The translations under genes were made by a program, and so were the position numbers. A stretch of 36,013 nucleotides of DNA from Neoconidiobolus thromboides FSU 785. Taxonomy: Eukaryota; Fungi; Entomophthoromycota. The notes beneath the pieces were generated by a model, which worked only from the letters and a program-made list of their open reading frames with translations, ran no database searches and was not told where the DNA came from. This document shows, piece by piece, positions 18,323-33,860 of the stretch. The stretch lies in contig MU626456.1 of the NCBI GenBank assembly GCA_025603075.1, positions 1 to 36,013 of the forward strand, written 5' to 3'. Position 1 is the stretch's first letter, and each line of letters starts with the position of its first letter.

Positions 18323-19364
18323 GTTGAATATATTACTTCTTTAATTGTGTAAGTCGCTTGTTTAATAAGTAGCCTGATTCTCCTAACTTCAAACCAATAT
18401 TATCTAATCTAAGTGCCCTCAGATCATTGAACTTATTAAATAATTAATTAAAACACACTTCCCATTTAAAAAAAGTATTTAGGACCCTTAATAAAGTGAT
18501 GATTAGTGGTACATACGGTATAATTATTGCTCTAAGATAACTTTTGAAATAACCATCAAAGTAATTATTTGCATTGTCAATTTCCGGATACTTTAAACTA
18601 TATATCATTTCCTTAATATAAATTCCATGCATAGGAATGTAATCTTCCACATACGTCTCGTCAATCAGAAGATTGTTATAGCTTGGGCCTGTCAAAAGGA
18701 TATTTTCTATATTTTCTATATTTTAAATAATAATCCAACGGTAGATAAAGCTTTGTGCTGTTTAGCCATACAGACAAAGGAATTAGTGGCCTTGAAAAAG
18801 GTTCAGTATAAAAATATTTAATATAATGACCATATTTTTTAAAACTGTTATATATGCTTTTCAAAGCAGTAATTCATCTTTGGAATCATATAATCCCATA
18901 GTATTGACACTATTACTTTATTCCACTTTTACAGCATAAAACCAAATTGAATTCATCTTTATATAATGGATGATACAAAACTCATTTTTGTCTCATTTCC
19001 AAGGTTCTTAAGTCTAAAGCCATCATCCATTGTTATTGTAATTCAATAAAGAAGAAAGTTTTTGCTTTTATTTATAAAGCGTCTTTTTTATTAGATTAAG
19101 CAAATGACTTGTTCTATAAAGTATCCCATAGCCTCAAAATATAAAAGTATAGTTAAAATGATAATAATTAATGTTATTAGGCCCTGCCCTAAAACATTGT
19201 CTAAAGTTATTATTGAGGGCAATATTTGTAAAAGTTATGTTAATAATTATATATGTGAAAATATCTGTAGAAAATAAGATACTCATATGTAAGATATGCT
19301 ACTGTAAAAATTTGTTAGTATAATTTGATAAACACAGAGATTCATGAGAAGTTCAAAATAAAGC

Positions 19365-19469: not shown

Positions 19470-20692
19470 GATAAATTTTTTACGTAAGGTTCTCAGTACA
19501 TACTTTATCAAATGAACACATAAAAGATAGACTATTAGGCTATTGAACAAGATTATTAGAAATGAATTAATGATATTACAGAAAGCTGTGTGTTTTTTGG
19601 CTATAGCTTTTAATAATAAAACTTTTAAAGTTTTTTAAAGATTTTATTCAAATACTAGAATAATTAGTCTTACATTTTTAAATAAGTAAACTTCAACTTT
19701 GTCTTCTTGTTGAGATATTTAATAAGAACATTATTTACTATTTAGTATATTGAAATCAAAATATAAATAGATATATTGACGTTTAGATGCTATATTATAT
19801 AATACCTCAAATTGCCTGATATTTTTATAAGTCAAATACAGACTAATTATAACCTTGTCTAATAACATGCTAATTAACTTTTAGGAAGGCACTGCTTATA
19901 TTTGAAATATAACTCTAATTGATAAAACAGTAATATATTTATAGCTGATGCTTTAATTAATTGCAAAACGAATCGATAATGATTATTATTAAACTATATT
20001 AGTTTTTATGATTAAGTTAGTTTTGTTTCAAGAAGACTAGAAAAAATGGACTTTTATTAATTGGCGACTAAAAACATTTAGTTAATTAGCAGCCCAAGAT
20101 GTAAATATTTCACTTCTTACAATAACAATAACAATAACTTATTATTATCATTTAATTAATATATAGAATATAATATTAATTTGTCCCCTAAATTAATATT
20201 ATTTAGAGTAAATAAACACATGCATGACTAATGAAAATCATATTTTTCAAGTTAAACCACTTTCTGTTTTATTCCAAAGCAATAATCCCCTGACTTTATG
20301 GCAATAGCTTAAATAAGAACTCATCATAAAGTTATTTTTAATTGAAAGGCAATCAATTATACTTTTAAGTTAATTGATTAAGCGAACAAAATAAGCTGGG
20401 GACTTTACTTATCGCCATCGATTCCTTGTAAAAAGTTAAAATCAGTATAATTAAATTGATTGGCCAACCACAAATACTCCCCAATGAGATTAAAATTATA
20501 AATCCTTATTATTCCAAATGAGACCAATTACTAGTGGGGACTGTTCATTAATATCCACAAAAGCTGGATTTAGAATAGCTACCAAAAGATCAAAACTATT
20601 ATTTTATAATCCTTGATTTTTTCTGAGTTGTTTCTATTACTTTAATTAATACTATTAATACTATACTTTATTATTAATATCAGCCTTTCAAA

Positions 20693-21585
20693 ATGGTTTT
20701 ATTCAATTCAAATTATTGGATTAAAGTTTTCTTATTACTACTTATTTTGAATTGGATTCAAGGACAAGAACCGGCTTCTTCCAATCCTGAATCTACAGCT
20801 CCAGCTCCAGCTTCAACTTCTGTCCCTCCCCCACCAGCAGAAACGTCCTCAGTCCCACCTCCACCTCCTGCAGAAACATCTAGCGTTCATCCTGTTCCAT
20901 CTTCGGAACCTACGCCTGCTCCATCTTCGCAAACTCCTAGCATTATTGCTCCACCACCTCCACCACAGACATCAAATCCACCACCAGAAACCTCAAATCC
21001 ACCAAACCCATCGACTCCAATTTCAGAACCAACTCCAACTCAAAATGAGTCAAACCCAACTATAAACCCTACACCTACTGCTAGCCCAACTGAAGTTAAA
21101 GAGTCAGCTATACCTTGTAAGTTTGAATAACTATTTGATAACAAAATTAACTAATTCATCTCTTAGCTACTTCAATTGAAGTATCTACCTCTCAAAAAGT
21201 AGAAAACGGAACCACCCAAATTGTATCAACAACAATAGCAAAAACATTTATACCATCTAGTACTTCAAATCCAGCAAATAATAATAATGACAAAAAGGAT
21301 AGTAGTAAAAGTAGTTCAAGTGATGATTCTCCTTCCTCTACCAATGTAGGAGCAATTGTAGGAGGAGTCATTGGAGGCATTGCATTTATAGCCATTGTAG
21401 TAGCAATCTTTTTATACCTTAAGAAAACAAAGCTTAAGAGACGTATGAAACCATTCGAATCTGGAGCTAATTCAGTCTCCAATTTAATGACAACTATGCG
21501 TCAACCGACTTCTTCAGCTTCATTGCCCAAATTAAGAACCCATGAATCCGAAGCCGTGTTTTTAAAACACCTTAATGAGCCTTAG
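20693..21585 (+). CDS. Type I membrane surface protein (signal peptide, Pro/Ser/Thr-rich stalk, one TM, short tail; Mid2/Wsc sensor-like); one intron
   Basis: Hydrophobic N-terminus WIKVFLLLLILNWIQG and PPPPAETSSV repeats. An intron from about 21118 to 21167 joins to an exon with VGAIVGGVIGGIAFIAIVVAIFLYLKKTK. Stop TAG at 21583-21585. Confidence 0.8.
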
Positions 21586-21968
21586 GAGCTTTTATTCTAT
21601 TCAACTAATATTTTTGATACTTTAATCTTTAGCTAATTTAAAATTTTATTAAAAAAGTTTTTTTAAACAGAAATATATTTTTAATGGCTTGGCTTAAAGC
21701 TTTAATCACTATAGATTTTAAACTATATAATTGTTATTATTTTAACCCTTATCATTTCTTTTATGAGTATTAAATTTTGCTTATAGTTATAATTTGGCTA
21801 TTATTGATAAAAAAAAATCTAAATCTCGAGTGACCAATAAAAAATAAGAATTAAGTCATCAAATCAAGTCAAAATATGCAAAATGATAAATACAATAACA
21901 TTTGTAACTCAAAATTTTAAATAAAATCTTTTTCTTTTTAATTCATTCAAAAGCACCTTTAAAAAACA

Positions 21969-23684
21969 ATGGAAGAGAAAAAGTGGACTTTAACGTCAGA
22001 GCAAGAATTAAGACTAGAAGTGGATAAAAAGCAAGCATTCAAACTAAAAGTAAAGCATTAAACAATCACCATAACTAATATTCAACCATATTTCTCCAGT
22101 TAGAAGTAGGTACAGCTGAAGTGTTTGGAACTGAGTTGGTAAAGAACATATGGTATGAGTTCACCAATACTAAGATTGCTTTGTTTACCTGGCATGGATG
22201 TGAATTAATTATATCCTTTTTTTATTACAAAATTAAAAATAAAACTTATTATTTGATATTATTTCTTTAACTTTTTATTTTTACTCTGAAGGGGAATGTA
22301 AAGTAGGTTACGCGGTAGATGAAACACCAATGCCAACTTATTTAAATTTACATTTGGCACTAGAAAATTTAAGAAACAAAAGTGAACAGAATAAAGAATT
22401 CGGACCAAGGGTAATAGAAATTAGCAATGAAAATGAAGATGTTAATTTTATTAGGTATTAATTTTAGGTCCAAAAGACAGTGGAAAAACCTCAATTTGTA
22501 AAATATTATTGAACTATTCTTTGAGACAAAAGAGAAGGCCTTTATTTATTGATTTAGATACTATGAATGTACTCTATTATACTTATAGTTATTACATAAA
22601 ATAACATATATTACTAGGGCACCATAACGATACCAGGAAGTATAGGGGCGGTGAGCTTAGATTATGTATTAAGTGTAGAAGAAGGGTTTTCAAACCTGGT
22701 TTCCATTTCTCAAGCAGAGGATAAGCCAATTCAGCCATTAAGTTATTTTTATGGGTATCATAATCCAAGTGAAAATAGTAGCTTGTATCAGAGATTAGTA
22801 AATCAATTGGGCCAAATGATTGATAAAAGAATGAAAAAGAATTTAGACAATAAAGTATCTGGATGTATCATTGATACTATTGGTTTAGTAGATGAAAAAG
22901 CATTTGAGCTGCATTTGAATGCTATAAAAACTTTTAACGGTAGGTATATTGTAATTATATATAACATAACATTTTATACATTTTCTTATAGTTAATGTGG
23001 TGATTGTCGTTGGGCATGAGAGATTATATAGCGATATGGTGCGAGCCAACCAAGATAATAAAGACATAACTGTACTAAGATTAGCAAAATCAGGGGGAGT
23101 AATAGTATAATTGCTATAATTTAACAATTAATATATATATCATTATATTAGGTGGTAACGCGAGACCCAGAAACAATGAAAGAATTACAGTCTAATAAAA
23201 TAAGAGAATACTTTTATGGAACTGTCAATAATGAGCTTACTCCTTCTCCTAATGTTATTAAATTTAATGATATCAACATTTTTAAAGTAGGAGAAAGTAA
23301 AAGCATACTATTTCATACTTAACAAACACTAATATTATTTTAGGTAAAATGGCCCCAACATCAGCATTGCCCGTCGGTATGGATCGTAAATTAAGTGAAA
23401 CCAAGTTAACTAAAATGGAGCTTGGAGAATATTTATTACATTCTATATTAGCTGTCTGTAGTACTAACTCAGATCAAGAAGATGACATAATTACTTCAAA
23501 TATTCATGGTTTTGTTTATATGTAAGCTACTATATCACTGTTTAGTTTATAGAGTACTTAACTCTTCTTATTTAGTACAGATATTGACCAGGCAAATCAA
23601 ACCATTACTTTACTGCTACCCTCCACTGGTAAATTACCTAACTCCACTTTGCTTTTAAGCTCCTTCCAATGGTTTGATGTTTAA
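21969..23684 (+). CDS. CLP1: Clp1 (mRNA cleavage/polyadenylation factor, RNA 5'-kinase family), multi-exon
   Basis: [26 protein letters not shown]-loop [37 protein letters not shown] and APTSALPVG. Confidence 0.95.
22211..22284 (+). other. U12-type AT-AC intron (CLP1 intron 2)
   Basis: 5' site ATATCCTTTT, branch-like TTCTTTAAC at 22263-22271, and 3' end TTTTAC. Removing it restores [16 protein letters not shown] in frame. Confidence 0.85.
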
Positions 23685-23792
23685 TAAATATTTGAATTGA
23701 ACAATAACTATAATCTTGTTCTACAATATTAGTAGTGTGTTATTTCTTAGTTCTCCATTAATTATAATTACTAAAAACAGTCACTATTTTAT

Positions 23793-23853
23793 CTAGCCAA
23801 TAAAACATGAAGACAGAGGGGTTGAATATTTAGCATCTTCACTGATTGGCTAG
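23793..23853. promoter_or_regulatory. Inverted pair of CTAGCCAAT (CCAAT-box-like) motifs upstream of SCP2
   Basis: CTAGCCAAT at 23793-23801 and its reverse complement ATTGGCTAG at 23845-23853, 150-200 bp before the ATG at 24003. Confidence 0.35.
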
Positions 23854-24002
23854 GTTTAAAAATCAGGCTGATGTTACAAAAAGTCAAAGATAGGTTTAGC
23901 ATTTAGTATTAGCATTTAAAAACAAAAGCTTCAACTTTTCAAATTATATTTTTGAATATTTGATTGAATATTTTCCAATACCATCATTTTCTTATATAGC
24001 AG

Positions 24003-24565
24003 ATGCAAATAAAAAAAGACCTAAAAGCGGACATTCTATTCCAGCAATTAAAACAAGAGCTAAAGAAACAGGAGGATCCAAGCAAATTTAACAAGATAAG
24101 GGGTTTGTTCATTATTTCAGTTTTTAACAAAGGAAAGTATGAGAAAGATTGGTAAATTTGTTTTCTGTTTATTTAGTGCACTTTAATGTTCAACTATCTT
24201 TTGTTGAATTTTTAGGTATATGTATTTTCAAGGTAAATTTTAAAGTCTTACCTATCAACAATAATTCTAATCAAACTCATAAAGGAAATAATGAAGCTCC
24301 AATAATAACTGATGTTCGCTCAACAATTAACACGACTTCTAATCAGCAGAAAACAGCCATCGTCATAATAGAATTAGAAGATAAAGATTTAGTGAATTTT
24401 GTAGCAGGCGGAATCAGCGGTATTCAAAGTATTATGTCTGGTAGAGTTAAAATCGTAGGAGACTTTAATTTGGCTCAGCAACTTGAAACTTTATTCCTTG
24501 AACTTGGAGGTGTGGAGAAAACAATGTCGTATATTAAGAGTGGACAGGTACAATCAAAGCTTTAA
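24003..24565 (+). CDS. SCP2 sterol-carrier domain protein with C-terminal PTS1 (SKL); 3 exons including a 17-nt microexon
   Basis: KADILFQQLK...IRGLFIISVF...W|YMYFQG|...IELEDKDLVNFVAGGISGIQSIMSGRVKIVGDFNLAQQLE...QSKL-stop. Confidence 0.82.
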
Positions 24566-25253
24566 TTAAAGTTAAGTTTACCATGCAGATGCAATTTTTA
24601 ATTAAATTTATTCCATTTTTTTAATTTACGCAAATTTTAATATTAAAAATAGCTTTAATGAGGCTTAAAAATTGATTTATTCAGTATGCTAAATATTACA
24701 ATAAAATACTTATAGCAGGGGTTAAATAAAAATGCATTTATTTCGAAGTATAAATACCTTAAAGTATTATTTAACGATTATAGTTATAACTATCTAAAAG
24801 GTAAGTAAGTAACTTAACACATAAAACAGAAAAATGTTTGAACAACATTATCAACTTAAATTATATCTACAAATTACGATTTAATTAATTTAAACAAATA
24901 AAATAATAAGAATAAGATCCCCAAATTAAGAAGAATTTATTAGAGTTAACTTCATAATGACATCTATTAACATAATCCTCAAGAGAAACCGTGTAAGCCA
25001 ATAAATTGATTTGAACAGCAAAGTAACCAGATCTAAGCGAATGAAATCAAAAAAAGCCAGTAAATGATTGGCACAAAAATATTTTAGAAAAGTAACGGAA
25101 CTAAAAAGTAAAAAAAGGGTAACAGCAAAGTTTAAATTGACTCAAAAACAACTTAATAAAATTGAAGAAATACCAGAGCCCCACTTGGATCAAAAATCCA
25201 AGCCAAAATTATTTAAAAGAATTTCTACTTCTCTATCAATTAAGTTCAATTCA

Positions 25254-26715
25254 ATGAATTTTTTATTTAAATCAAAGAACAAATCCCCTGCTGAACTCGT
25301 TAAAGTGGTTAGAGAAACTATCCCTAAGTTAGAGCATGGTGATAAAAGAAAAGTATTGTTATATATCACATTAATGTTATCCTTTATTTATTTTTATTTT
25401 AAATAGGCAAAAGAAGAAGTAGCAAAATGTTTATCTTCAATGAAGGTAATATTATTTGGGGATGGAGGTAACTAAACAATTGAATAAAGATTTAAAGAAG
25501 ACTAATTTGAATTAAAAGATAACGAACCATCAATGGAACTAGTAGCCCAATTATCTCAAGAAATCTATAACAATGATTTATTATCTATTTTGATTAACAA
25601 CATTTCTCGTCTTGAGTTTGAAGTAAGTTTATAGAGAAGCATAAAATATATAGTATATCTAAATCATGTAGACTCGTAAAGATGTAGCACAAATATTTAA
25701 TAACTTGCTAAGAAGAAAGATCGGATCTAGATTACCAACTGTTGAATATTTAGCTAATAGAGAAAAGATTTTATTCTTATTATTAAAAGGGTAGGTATTT
25801 AGGTTTTGACGAAACACATTATTGACAATCATTAATGTATATTTAATAGGTATGAGACAGCAGAAATAGCATTAAACTGCGGAATGGTATTAAGGGAATG
25901 CTTTCGTTATGAACCATTAGCACAAATCATACTAAACTCAGAAGCTTTCTTTGATTTTTTTAATTATGTCGAAACAGGTACCTTTGATATTGCCTCTGAT
26001 GCTTTTGCCTCATTTAGAGTAAGAATAATTCGACTGATTATGATAAAGGACATCTTTTAATGATATTATTAGGAAATTTTAACTCGTCATAAAAAACTAG
26101 TATCTCAGTTTTTAGAAGCTAACTATGATAAAGTAAATTATTATTTGTTAAGTTGATTAATTGACTAATGTGCTTTATTTATAGTTTTTTGAAGAATATC
26201 AAAAGTTACTTAATTCACCAAATTACGTTACCAAAAGACAGTCCTTAAAGGTAACTTTTATTTTATTTATTAATACAAATAATTAATAATTGATATTTTT
26301 AGCTGCTAAATGAAATTTTATTAGAACGTTCTAATTTTACGATTATGACCCGCTATATTTCCGTTGGGGATACACTCAAATTAATGATGAACTTATTAAG
26401 GGATAAAAGTCGCAACATTCAATTCGAAGCATTTCATGTATTTAAAGTAAACTATTAACATTATATAACAAAAATAATATTAATGTAATATAATAGGTGT
26501 TTGTTGCCAATCCTAATAAAAGCAAACCAGTTTTAGATATATTGACCAAAAATAAAGATAAATTGGAAACTTTCTTGAGCAATTTTCATAACGATCGTAA
26601 TGGTAAACTTAATACTTATTATATGTTAATCAACTTATATTGACACATTAATTTAGATGACCAACAATTCCATGACGAGAAGGCATTTTTATTAAAGCAA
26701 ATCCAAAAGCTTTAA
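25254..26715 (+). CDS. HYM1: Mo25/Hym1/CAB39 scaffold protein, about 10 exons
   Basis: [80 protein letters not shown] and [16 protein letters not shown]. Confidence 0.95.
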
Positions 26716-27554: not shown

Positions 27555-28068
27555 TTATTCAAAGCGTACCTTCTTCTTTATCTATTTAAAATTAAAGTTT
27601 TATTATTATTATCAATCTTATTGATTTACCTTTTTTGCATTCTTGTTGGTAGTAGTAATATTTGAAGACTCGCTATTATTTGTAATGCTGTTTTTATTTA
27701 TAGTAGTATCCTTATTTTCAGTGACACTTTTTGTATTATTTTTAGTTTTATTTTTAGCTATCAACTTTTTCTTCATTTCTTCCAACTTCTTGTTCCTTTC
27801 ACTTTTTCGAATCTCCTTTTGCTCCTCTTTCTCTTTTAAATATTGTTGTTTTGAGCTCTAAACAAATTAGATTCCATATCATTTTGTTATACAAATTACT
27901 ATTACTTCTTTTAGCTTCTTGTTATTTATTGCTTCATTTTGTTTTTCAATAATCCCACCCATGATTTTAAGCATATCTTCCTTGAATAATCAAATCTTTT
28001 AGTTTTAATTTATTAGCTAATATTACTATAGTTACTCTCTCTACATATTTAGTTGCTTTCTTTTTCAT
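27555..28068 (-). CDS. Small Lys/Glu-rich nucleolar-type protein, Loc1-like (60S assembly); 4 exons, absent from the ORF track
   Basis: Three clean GT-AG introns give MKKKATKYVERE-DMLKIMGGIIEKQNEAINNKKLKE-SSKQQYLKEKEEQKEIRKSERNKKLEEMKKKL...-IKKKVRFE-stop. The layout resembles fungal Loc1 (by recall). Confidence 0.65.
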
Positions 28069-33630: not shown

Positions 33631-33860
33631 CAAGTCTTCTCATCTTTTTGATAGTGCTTAAATCAGATTAAAACTTTAAGTATTACTTGTTTTGACAAAT
33701 GGTGGATTTCAAAAAAAACCCAGATTAAAAGGATATTAACCTTTTAATAAGATATTTGATTTCTGTTATCCTAAGTATATTACTAATATATATGTATATT
33801 TGATTAAACCCAACATATTTATTGACATTTTAACAATAATGAATTTTTCCTAAAAATTTA

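Follow-up and report, generated by a model that had tools for sequence, protein, structure and literature searches.

U12-type AT-AC introns were reportedly defined by Hall & Padgett and by Tarn & Steitz. In U12-type introns, some 10-20 nt separate the branch site from the downstream 3' splice site. The type is recognized by the sequence ATATCCTT at positions +1 to +8, by a TCCTTAAC branch site, and by an AC acceptor (PMC2831892). Phase 0 is the least common phase among minor introns. AT-AC termini are also found in introns of the U2-type, known from sodium-channel genes, in which positions +4, +5 and +6 are occupied by A, G and T, respectively (PMC2831892). Early-diverging fungi have been documented to possess minor introns, along with the full set of four minor snRNAs and with minor-specific proteins (Larue & Roy 2023, PMC10639083); 205 minor introns are on record in Rhizophagus and 249 in Basidiobolus (Zoopagomycota). 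An earlier note on this DNA had stated that the minor spliceosome is kept in some of these fungi. U12-type introns in early-diverging fungi are a kind already known.

The intron of the CLP1 gene of Neoconidiobolus thromboides analyzed here resides in a window (the whole stretch of DNA that was analyzed) of 36,013 nt. It resembles the catalogued U12-type AT-AC introns in the ATATCCTT 5' site, in a branch site resembling TCCTTAAC and located near the 3' end, in the AT-AC termini, and also because found at a position kept among distant species, in an old housekeeping gene. It differs from the catalogued introns in one C-to-T change in the branch site, in the phase, which is 0, in the short size (74 nt) and in the low GC content (11% G+C). 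With the U2-type AT-AC introns it shares the termini. The 5' sites of these introns, however, are ATAAGT-like and carry G at +5, while the CLP1 intron begins with ATATCC, and has C at +5. The earlier note had claimed a U12-type AT-AC intron at 22211-22284 in CLP1. The claim is sustained by a joint found in RNA, by the 5' and branch signals, and by introns located at the same site in three other fungi, and we hold with high confidence that 22211-22284 is a U12-type (minor-spliceosome) intron.

The CLP1 gene is organized as follows (coordinates are those of the window).

21969-23684, forward strand: CLP1 coding region, 9 exons, 430 aa plus a TAA stop
21969-22049, 22100-22210, 22285-22410, 22455-22568 and 22618-22939, forward strand: exons 1-5, junctions from RNA contigs
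22992-23098, 23152-23296, 23344-23521 and 23576-23684, forward strand: exons 6-9, junctions from RNA contigs
22100-22210, forward strand: exon 2, ending with ...FTWHGCELI (last codons TGG CAT GGA TGT GAA TTA ATT)
22285-22410, forward strand: exon 3, beginning with SEGECKVGY

Translation of the RNA-supported junctions gives a single open frame. The products of single exon pieces match PF16573 (CLP1_N; E 4e-14, 1e-06), PF16575 (CLP1_P, P-loop; E 4e-11, 9e-18) and PF06807 (Clp1 C-terminal; E 1e-10), all above the curated Pfam cut-off. The three-domain Clp1 architecture (CLP1_N, CLP1_P, Clp1) is complete in the spliced protein, which features the Walker A sequence GPKDSGKTS, and is 47-49% identical, over the full length, to the Clp1 proteins of Conidiobolus and Massospora. 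As judged from homology, N. thromboides CLP1 probably encodes a polyribonucleotide 5'-hydroxyl-kinase, which belongs as a subunit to the mRNA 3'-end cleavage factor.

Exons 2 and 3 are colinear with other Clp1 proteins. On the CLP1_N profile exon 2 covers positions 24-58 and exon 3 positions 61-91, the two abutting without a gap when unaligned end residues are taken into account. On the human CLP1 chain 8hmy_E, exon 2 aligns with residues 59-92 and exon 3 with residues 97-136; the exon boundary corresponds to chain residues 94/95, which are contiguous, and to residues 71/72 of C. elegans clpf-1 (4ohv_A). When more than 100 homologues were aligned, no gap was found at the junction within the C-x5-G-x5-Y block; the earlier note gives HGC-x5-G-x5-Y as the spacing of other Clp1 proteins.

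Excision of the intron joins WHGCELI to SEGECKVGY. The elements of the intron are listed below.

22211-22284, forward strand: AT-AC intron of CLP1, very probably U12-type; 74 nt, phase 0, RNA joint 22210->22285
22211-22220, forward strand: 5' splice site ATATCCTTTT, of the U12-type, matching the ATATCCTT consensus at +1 to +8
22264-22271, forward strand: branch-site motif TCTTTAAC, with 1 mismatch (C-to-T) from TCCTTAAC
22283-22284, forward strand: 3' splice site, terminal AC; the intron ends with ...TTTTTAC
22268-22270, forward strand: in-frame TAA met upon intron retention (ORF 22121..22270, read-through translation)

Logan contigs of four RNA runs were aligned to the interval 20600-26500 of the window. 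Run X1 carries organism code A; runs X2 and X3, from another study, organism code B; run X6 organism code C. The joint 22210->22285, which skips 74 nt with AT..AC ends and has a positional ambiguity of 0, was found in contigs of X1, X2 and X3, where the shorter flank of the joint measures 111 nt. In X6, which derives from a relative (~92-95% identical), the contig begins within exon 3, outside the 22210/22285 junction. The contigs carrying the joint also remove the flanking GT-AG introns, and therefore represent spliced mRNA. The cuts in the pre-mRNA fall precisely between 22210 and 22211 and between 22284 and 22285, and splicing gives the full 430-aa Clp1, with the N-terminal beta-sandwich domain intact. 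The other seven CLP1 introns defined by the RNA contigs are of the GT-AG type, and measure 44-54 nt.

Much of what the earlier note had drawn from the letters alone is recovered in these data: the junction 22210/22285 is present in three runs of two studies, the conserved frame breaks after WHGCELI, a branch-like motif lies about 14 nt before the terminal AC, the 74-nt intron is longer than the GT-AG introns of the gene, and retention leads to the in-frame TAA. In this case the stop comes after 20 further codons.

The RNA evidence is made up of assembled contigs, not raw reads; contigs drop rare variants, and give no level of splicing efficiency or of intron retention. A junction known from assembled contigs might in principle reflect an assembly artefact, or a 74-bp deletion polymorphism, instead of splicing. 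The probability of this is negligible: the flanking GT-AG introns are precisely absent from the same contigs, two independent studies yield the same junction, the ends of which coincide with AT/AC and with U12 motifs, and the homologous position carries an intron in three further genomes.

Additional features were observed in the RNA contigs aligned to this interval. Over 20600-26500, X2 and X3 contain the genes in two sequence forms: identity to the window is at least 99% in the first and 90-95% in the second, which matches X6. The two forms could denote a mixed culture, sibling species or divergent haplotypes. In X1, one 2018-nt contig (23576-24165) runs from the last CLP1 exon through the poly(A) site (~23707) and the intergenic region into a SCP2-like gene, and may be either a read-through transcript or an assembly merge; in X2, X3 and X6, depth is zero at 23752-23948, and poly(A) tails are found at 23707. 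The downstream SCP2-like gene contains a 17-nt microexon (GTATATGTATTTTCAAG) at 24216-24232, flanked by GT-AG introns (24152-24215 and 24233-24284). A "TG..TA" joint, 24165->24282, found in all four runs, was considered as a second non-canonical intron and rejected as an alignment artefact of the microexon: between the start of the latter and the 14 bases at 24152-24165 there are exactly 3 differences, in agreement with the 3 mismatches of the contig piece.

The CLP1 locus features a second, nested pair of potential splice sites.

22200-22291, forward strand: nested GT..AG pair (GTGAAT...CTGAAG), 92 nt; its use would swap CELISEG for W

The pair is in frame, and the locus might be twintron-like, the nested sites being also used to make a Clp1 isoform 6 residues shorter. 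Use at a low level is compatible with contigs which drop rare variants, and analogous nested GT-AG sites were picked by predictors in the Gigaspora and Cetraspora models. We nevertheless regard this as unlikely. The corresponding 22199/22292 joint was not seen in contigs of any of the four RNA runs, removal of the Cys and of five more residues would hit a block which is gap-free in essentially all Clp1 proteins, and the GT of the pair is simply due to the Gly-Cys codons.

At the AT-AC intron itself, ATATCCTT is found exact at 22211-22218, followed by TT, in agreement with the extended [A/G]TATCCTT definition of the 5' site. The sequence TTCTTTAAC spans residues 22263-22271, and the branch A within it (22270) precedes the 3' end of the intron by 14 nt. 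The C-to-T change in TCTTTAAC would still permit a G-U pair with U12. The U12 branch motif was absent from the seven GT-AG introns of CLP1 in a motif search. In number, the U12 motifs are not in excess: RTATCCTT is found 4 times in the window, which has a GC content of 28%, vs. 4.6 times expected, and a loose version of the full pattern (5' site, branch site and AC) occurs ~0.9 times per shuffled window. The three other RTATCCTT matches (18696-18703, reverse strand; 27706-27713, forward strand; 33729-33736, reverse strand) are likely chance matches, being off frame breaks or on the wrong strand, and none is followed downstream by a U12 branch motif plus AC/AG. Since the motifs alone do not rise above chance, the proof that the motif ends are used comes from the RNA junction and from the colinear protein.

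AT-AC termini by themselves do not prove dependence on U12, and the intron might be removed by the major (U2-type) spliceosome, as in sodium-channel genes. A rare pathway leading from AT-AC introns of the U12-type to AT-AC introns of the U2-type has been described (PMC2831892), and an Rfam scan of the 36-kb window gave zero matches to snRNA or other families. Yet removal by the major spliceosome is very unlikely. The C at +5 is part of the invariant U12 site, and is at odds with the G found there in U2-type AT-AC introns; a U12-type branch motif is located at a short distance, typical of U12 introns; and the same U12 signals are kept at the CLP1 site over three fungal phyla. For an intron of the U12-type, the established mechanism predicts that the 5' site ATATCCTTT would be recognized by U11 and later by U6atac, and the branch site TCTTTAAC, upstream of the terminal AC, by U12.

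Intron conservation was monitored in homologous CLP1 loci, obtained by exact protein look-up. AT-AC introns reside at the same site in an entomophthoralean (Massospora), a glomeromycete (Gigaspora) and a chytrid (Spizellomyces).

L001:2315-2380, Massospora cicadina: 66 nt; 5' site ATATCCTTTT; branch TCCTTGAC; branch A to 3' end, 17
L011:2421-2504, Gigaspora rosea: 84 nt; 5' site ATATCCTAAA; branch TCCTTAGC; branch A to 3' end, 16
L012:1980-2046, Spizellomyces 'palustris': 67 nt; 5' site ATATCCTTTT; branch TCTTTGAC; branch A to 3' end, 10

All three are in phase 0, and interrupt CLP1 at a codon boundary identical to that of N. thromboides (third residue after HGC), the outcome of a comparison of intron positions among fungal CLP1 genes which the earlier note had proposed. 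No intron interrupts this site in Conidiobolus coronatus (L004), Lobosporangium transversale (L013), a Pneumocystis assembly (L008) or Populus euphratica; in the latter, the GT-AG introns of CLP1 lie elsewhere. Human CLP1 is not known to carry an intron here.

Further variation was observed in other fungi. CLP1 of Furculomyces boomerangus contains a GT-AG intron (GTATATTTTT...TTTACTAG; L005:826-887 approx.), in phase 2, located 5 nt downstream of the U12 site. It may have arisen separately from the ancestral minor intron, or have descended from it by shift and conversion. At L002:2408-2496 (GCA_027575805.1), the conserved spacing is restored only by non-canonical ends, either ATAAGT..AC (ATAAGTAT...GATTAC, with the +4A/+5G/+6T signature of the rare U2-type AT-AC introns) or ATATAA..AG (ATATAATC...TTAAG); the public model P0069 lacks 12 conserved residues at the site. 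The L002 intron may be a U12-to-U2 conversion which retained AT-AC ends. At L003:2333-2442 (GCA_025201365.1), ATATCCTTT and a TTCTCTTAAC motif follow the homologous site at a distance of 9 nt; in this locus the conserved spacing is restored by none of the end combinations, and the public model P0020 contains a frame shift at this point. On the simplest reading of these sequences, the minor intron would go back to an ancestor shared by chytrids and terrestrial fungi, and would have undergone later losses, and possibly conversions.

The public protein P0175 ([quoted passage not shown]) is 351 aa long, contains the CLP1_P and Clp1 domains only, and is identical to the spliced protein from residue 80 to the C-terminus.

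22330-22332, forward strand: ATG of Met80, start codon of P0175, placed by the suffix match

As P0175 starts just downstream of the AT-AC intron, 79 N-terminal residues, and with them the whole CLP1_N domain, are missing. The expectation that standard predictors would mis-model the gene holds true for P0175, and for more species. Automatic predictors allow GT-AG introns only, and public models are consequently wrong at the CLP1 site. The Massospora model translates through the intron, and features a 22-aa insertion beginning with ISF; two transcript-derived entomophthoralean proteins (P0151 and P0152) have a clean junction, and lack this insertion. The Gigaspora rosea model lacks seven conserved residues at the site, and the Spizellomyces 'palustris' model is garbled, conserved residues being deleted. 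The models of Entomophthora muscae and Diversispora epigaea are truncated at the same Met as P0175, and those of Cetraspora, Geosiphon, Bifiguratus and Polyrhizophydium exhibit deletions or odd residues at the site; the models of these six taxa are consistent with the presence of the same intron. A 350-aa model from Lobosporangium was also considered as truncated by the intron, and rejected, because the model is cut by the contig end and the site is intronless.

A literature search gave no paper on a minor intron in CLP1, or on U12 splicing in N. thromboides. New are a CLP1 intron verified by RNA and missing from the public model, the use of one boundary over three phyla, and a systematic mis-annotation of the Clp1 N-terminus. 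The finding does not change what is known on the workings or the occurrence of minor splicing.

The antiquity of the CLP1 AT-AC intron is well supported. It may be asked whether a pan-fungal CLP1 minor intron, older than the split between chytrids and terrestrial fungi, was kept because the level of Clp1 is set by slow minor splicing. We deem this improbable, and the role of the intron as a regulatory "gate" on Clp1 expression is pure conjecture; if true, the minor spliceosome and mRNA 3'-end processing would be linked by slow splicing via Clp1.

Corrections of the Clp1 models are due in N. thromboides and at least in Massospora, Gigaspora and Spizellomyces, each model being wrong in a different way. 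As a result of such mis-models, minor introns will be under-counted in early-diverging fungi by surveys based on annotation. The CLP1 intron provides a phylogenetic marker common to Chytridiomycota, Glomeromycotina and Entomophthoromycotina, and helps to reconstruct the loss and the conversion of minor introns.
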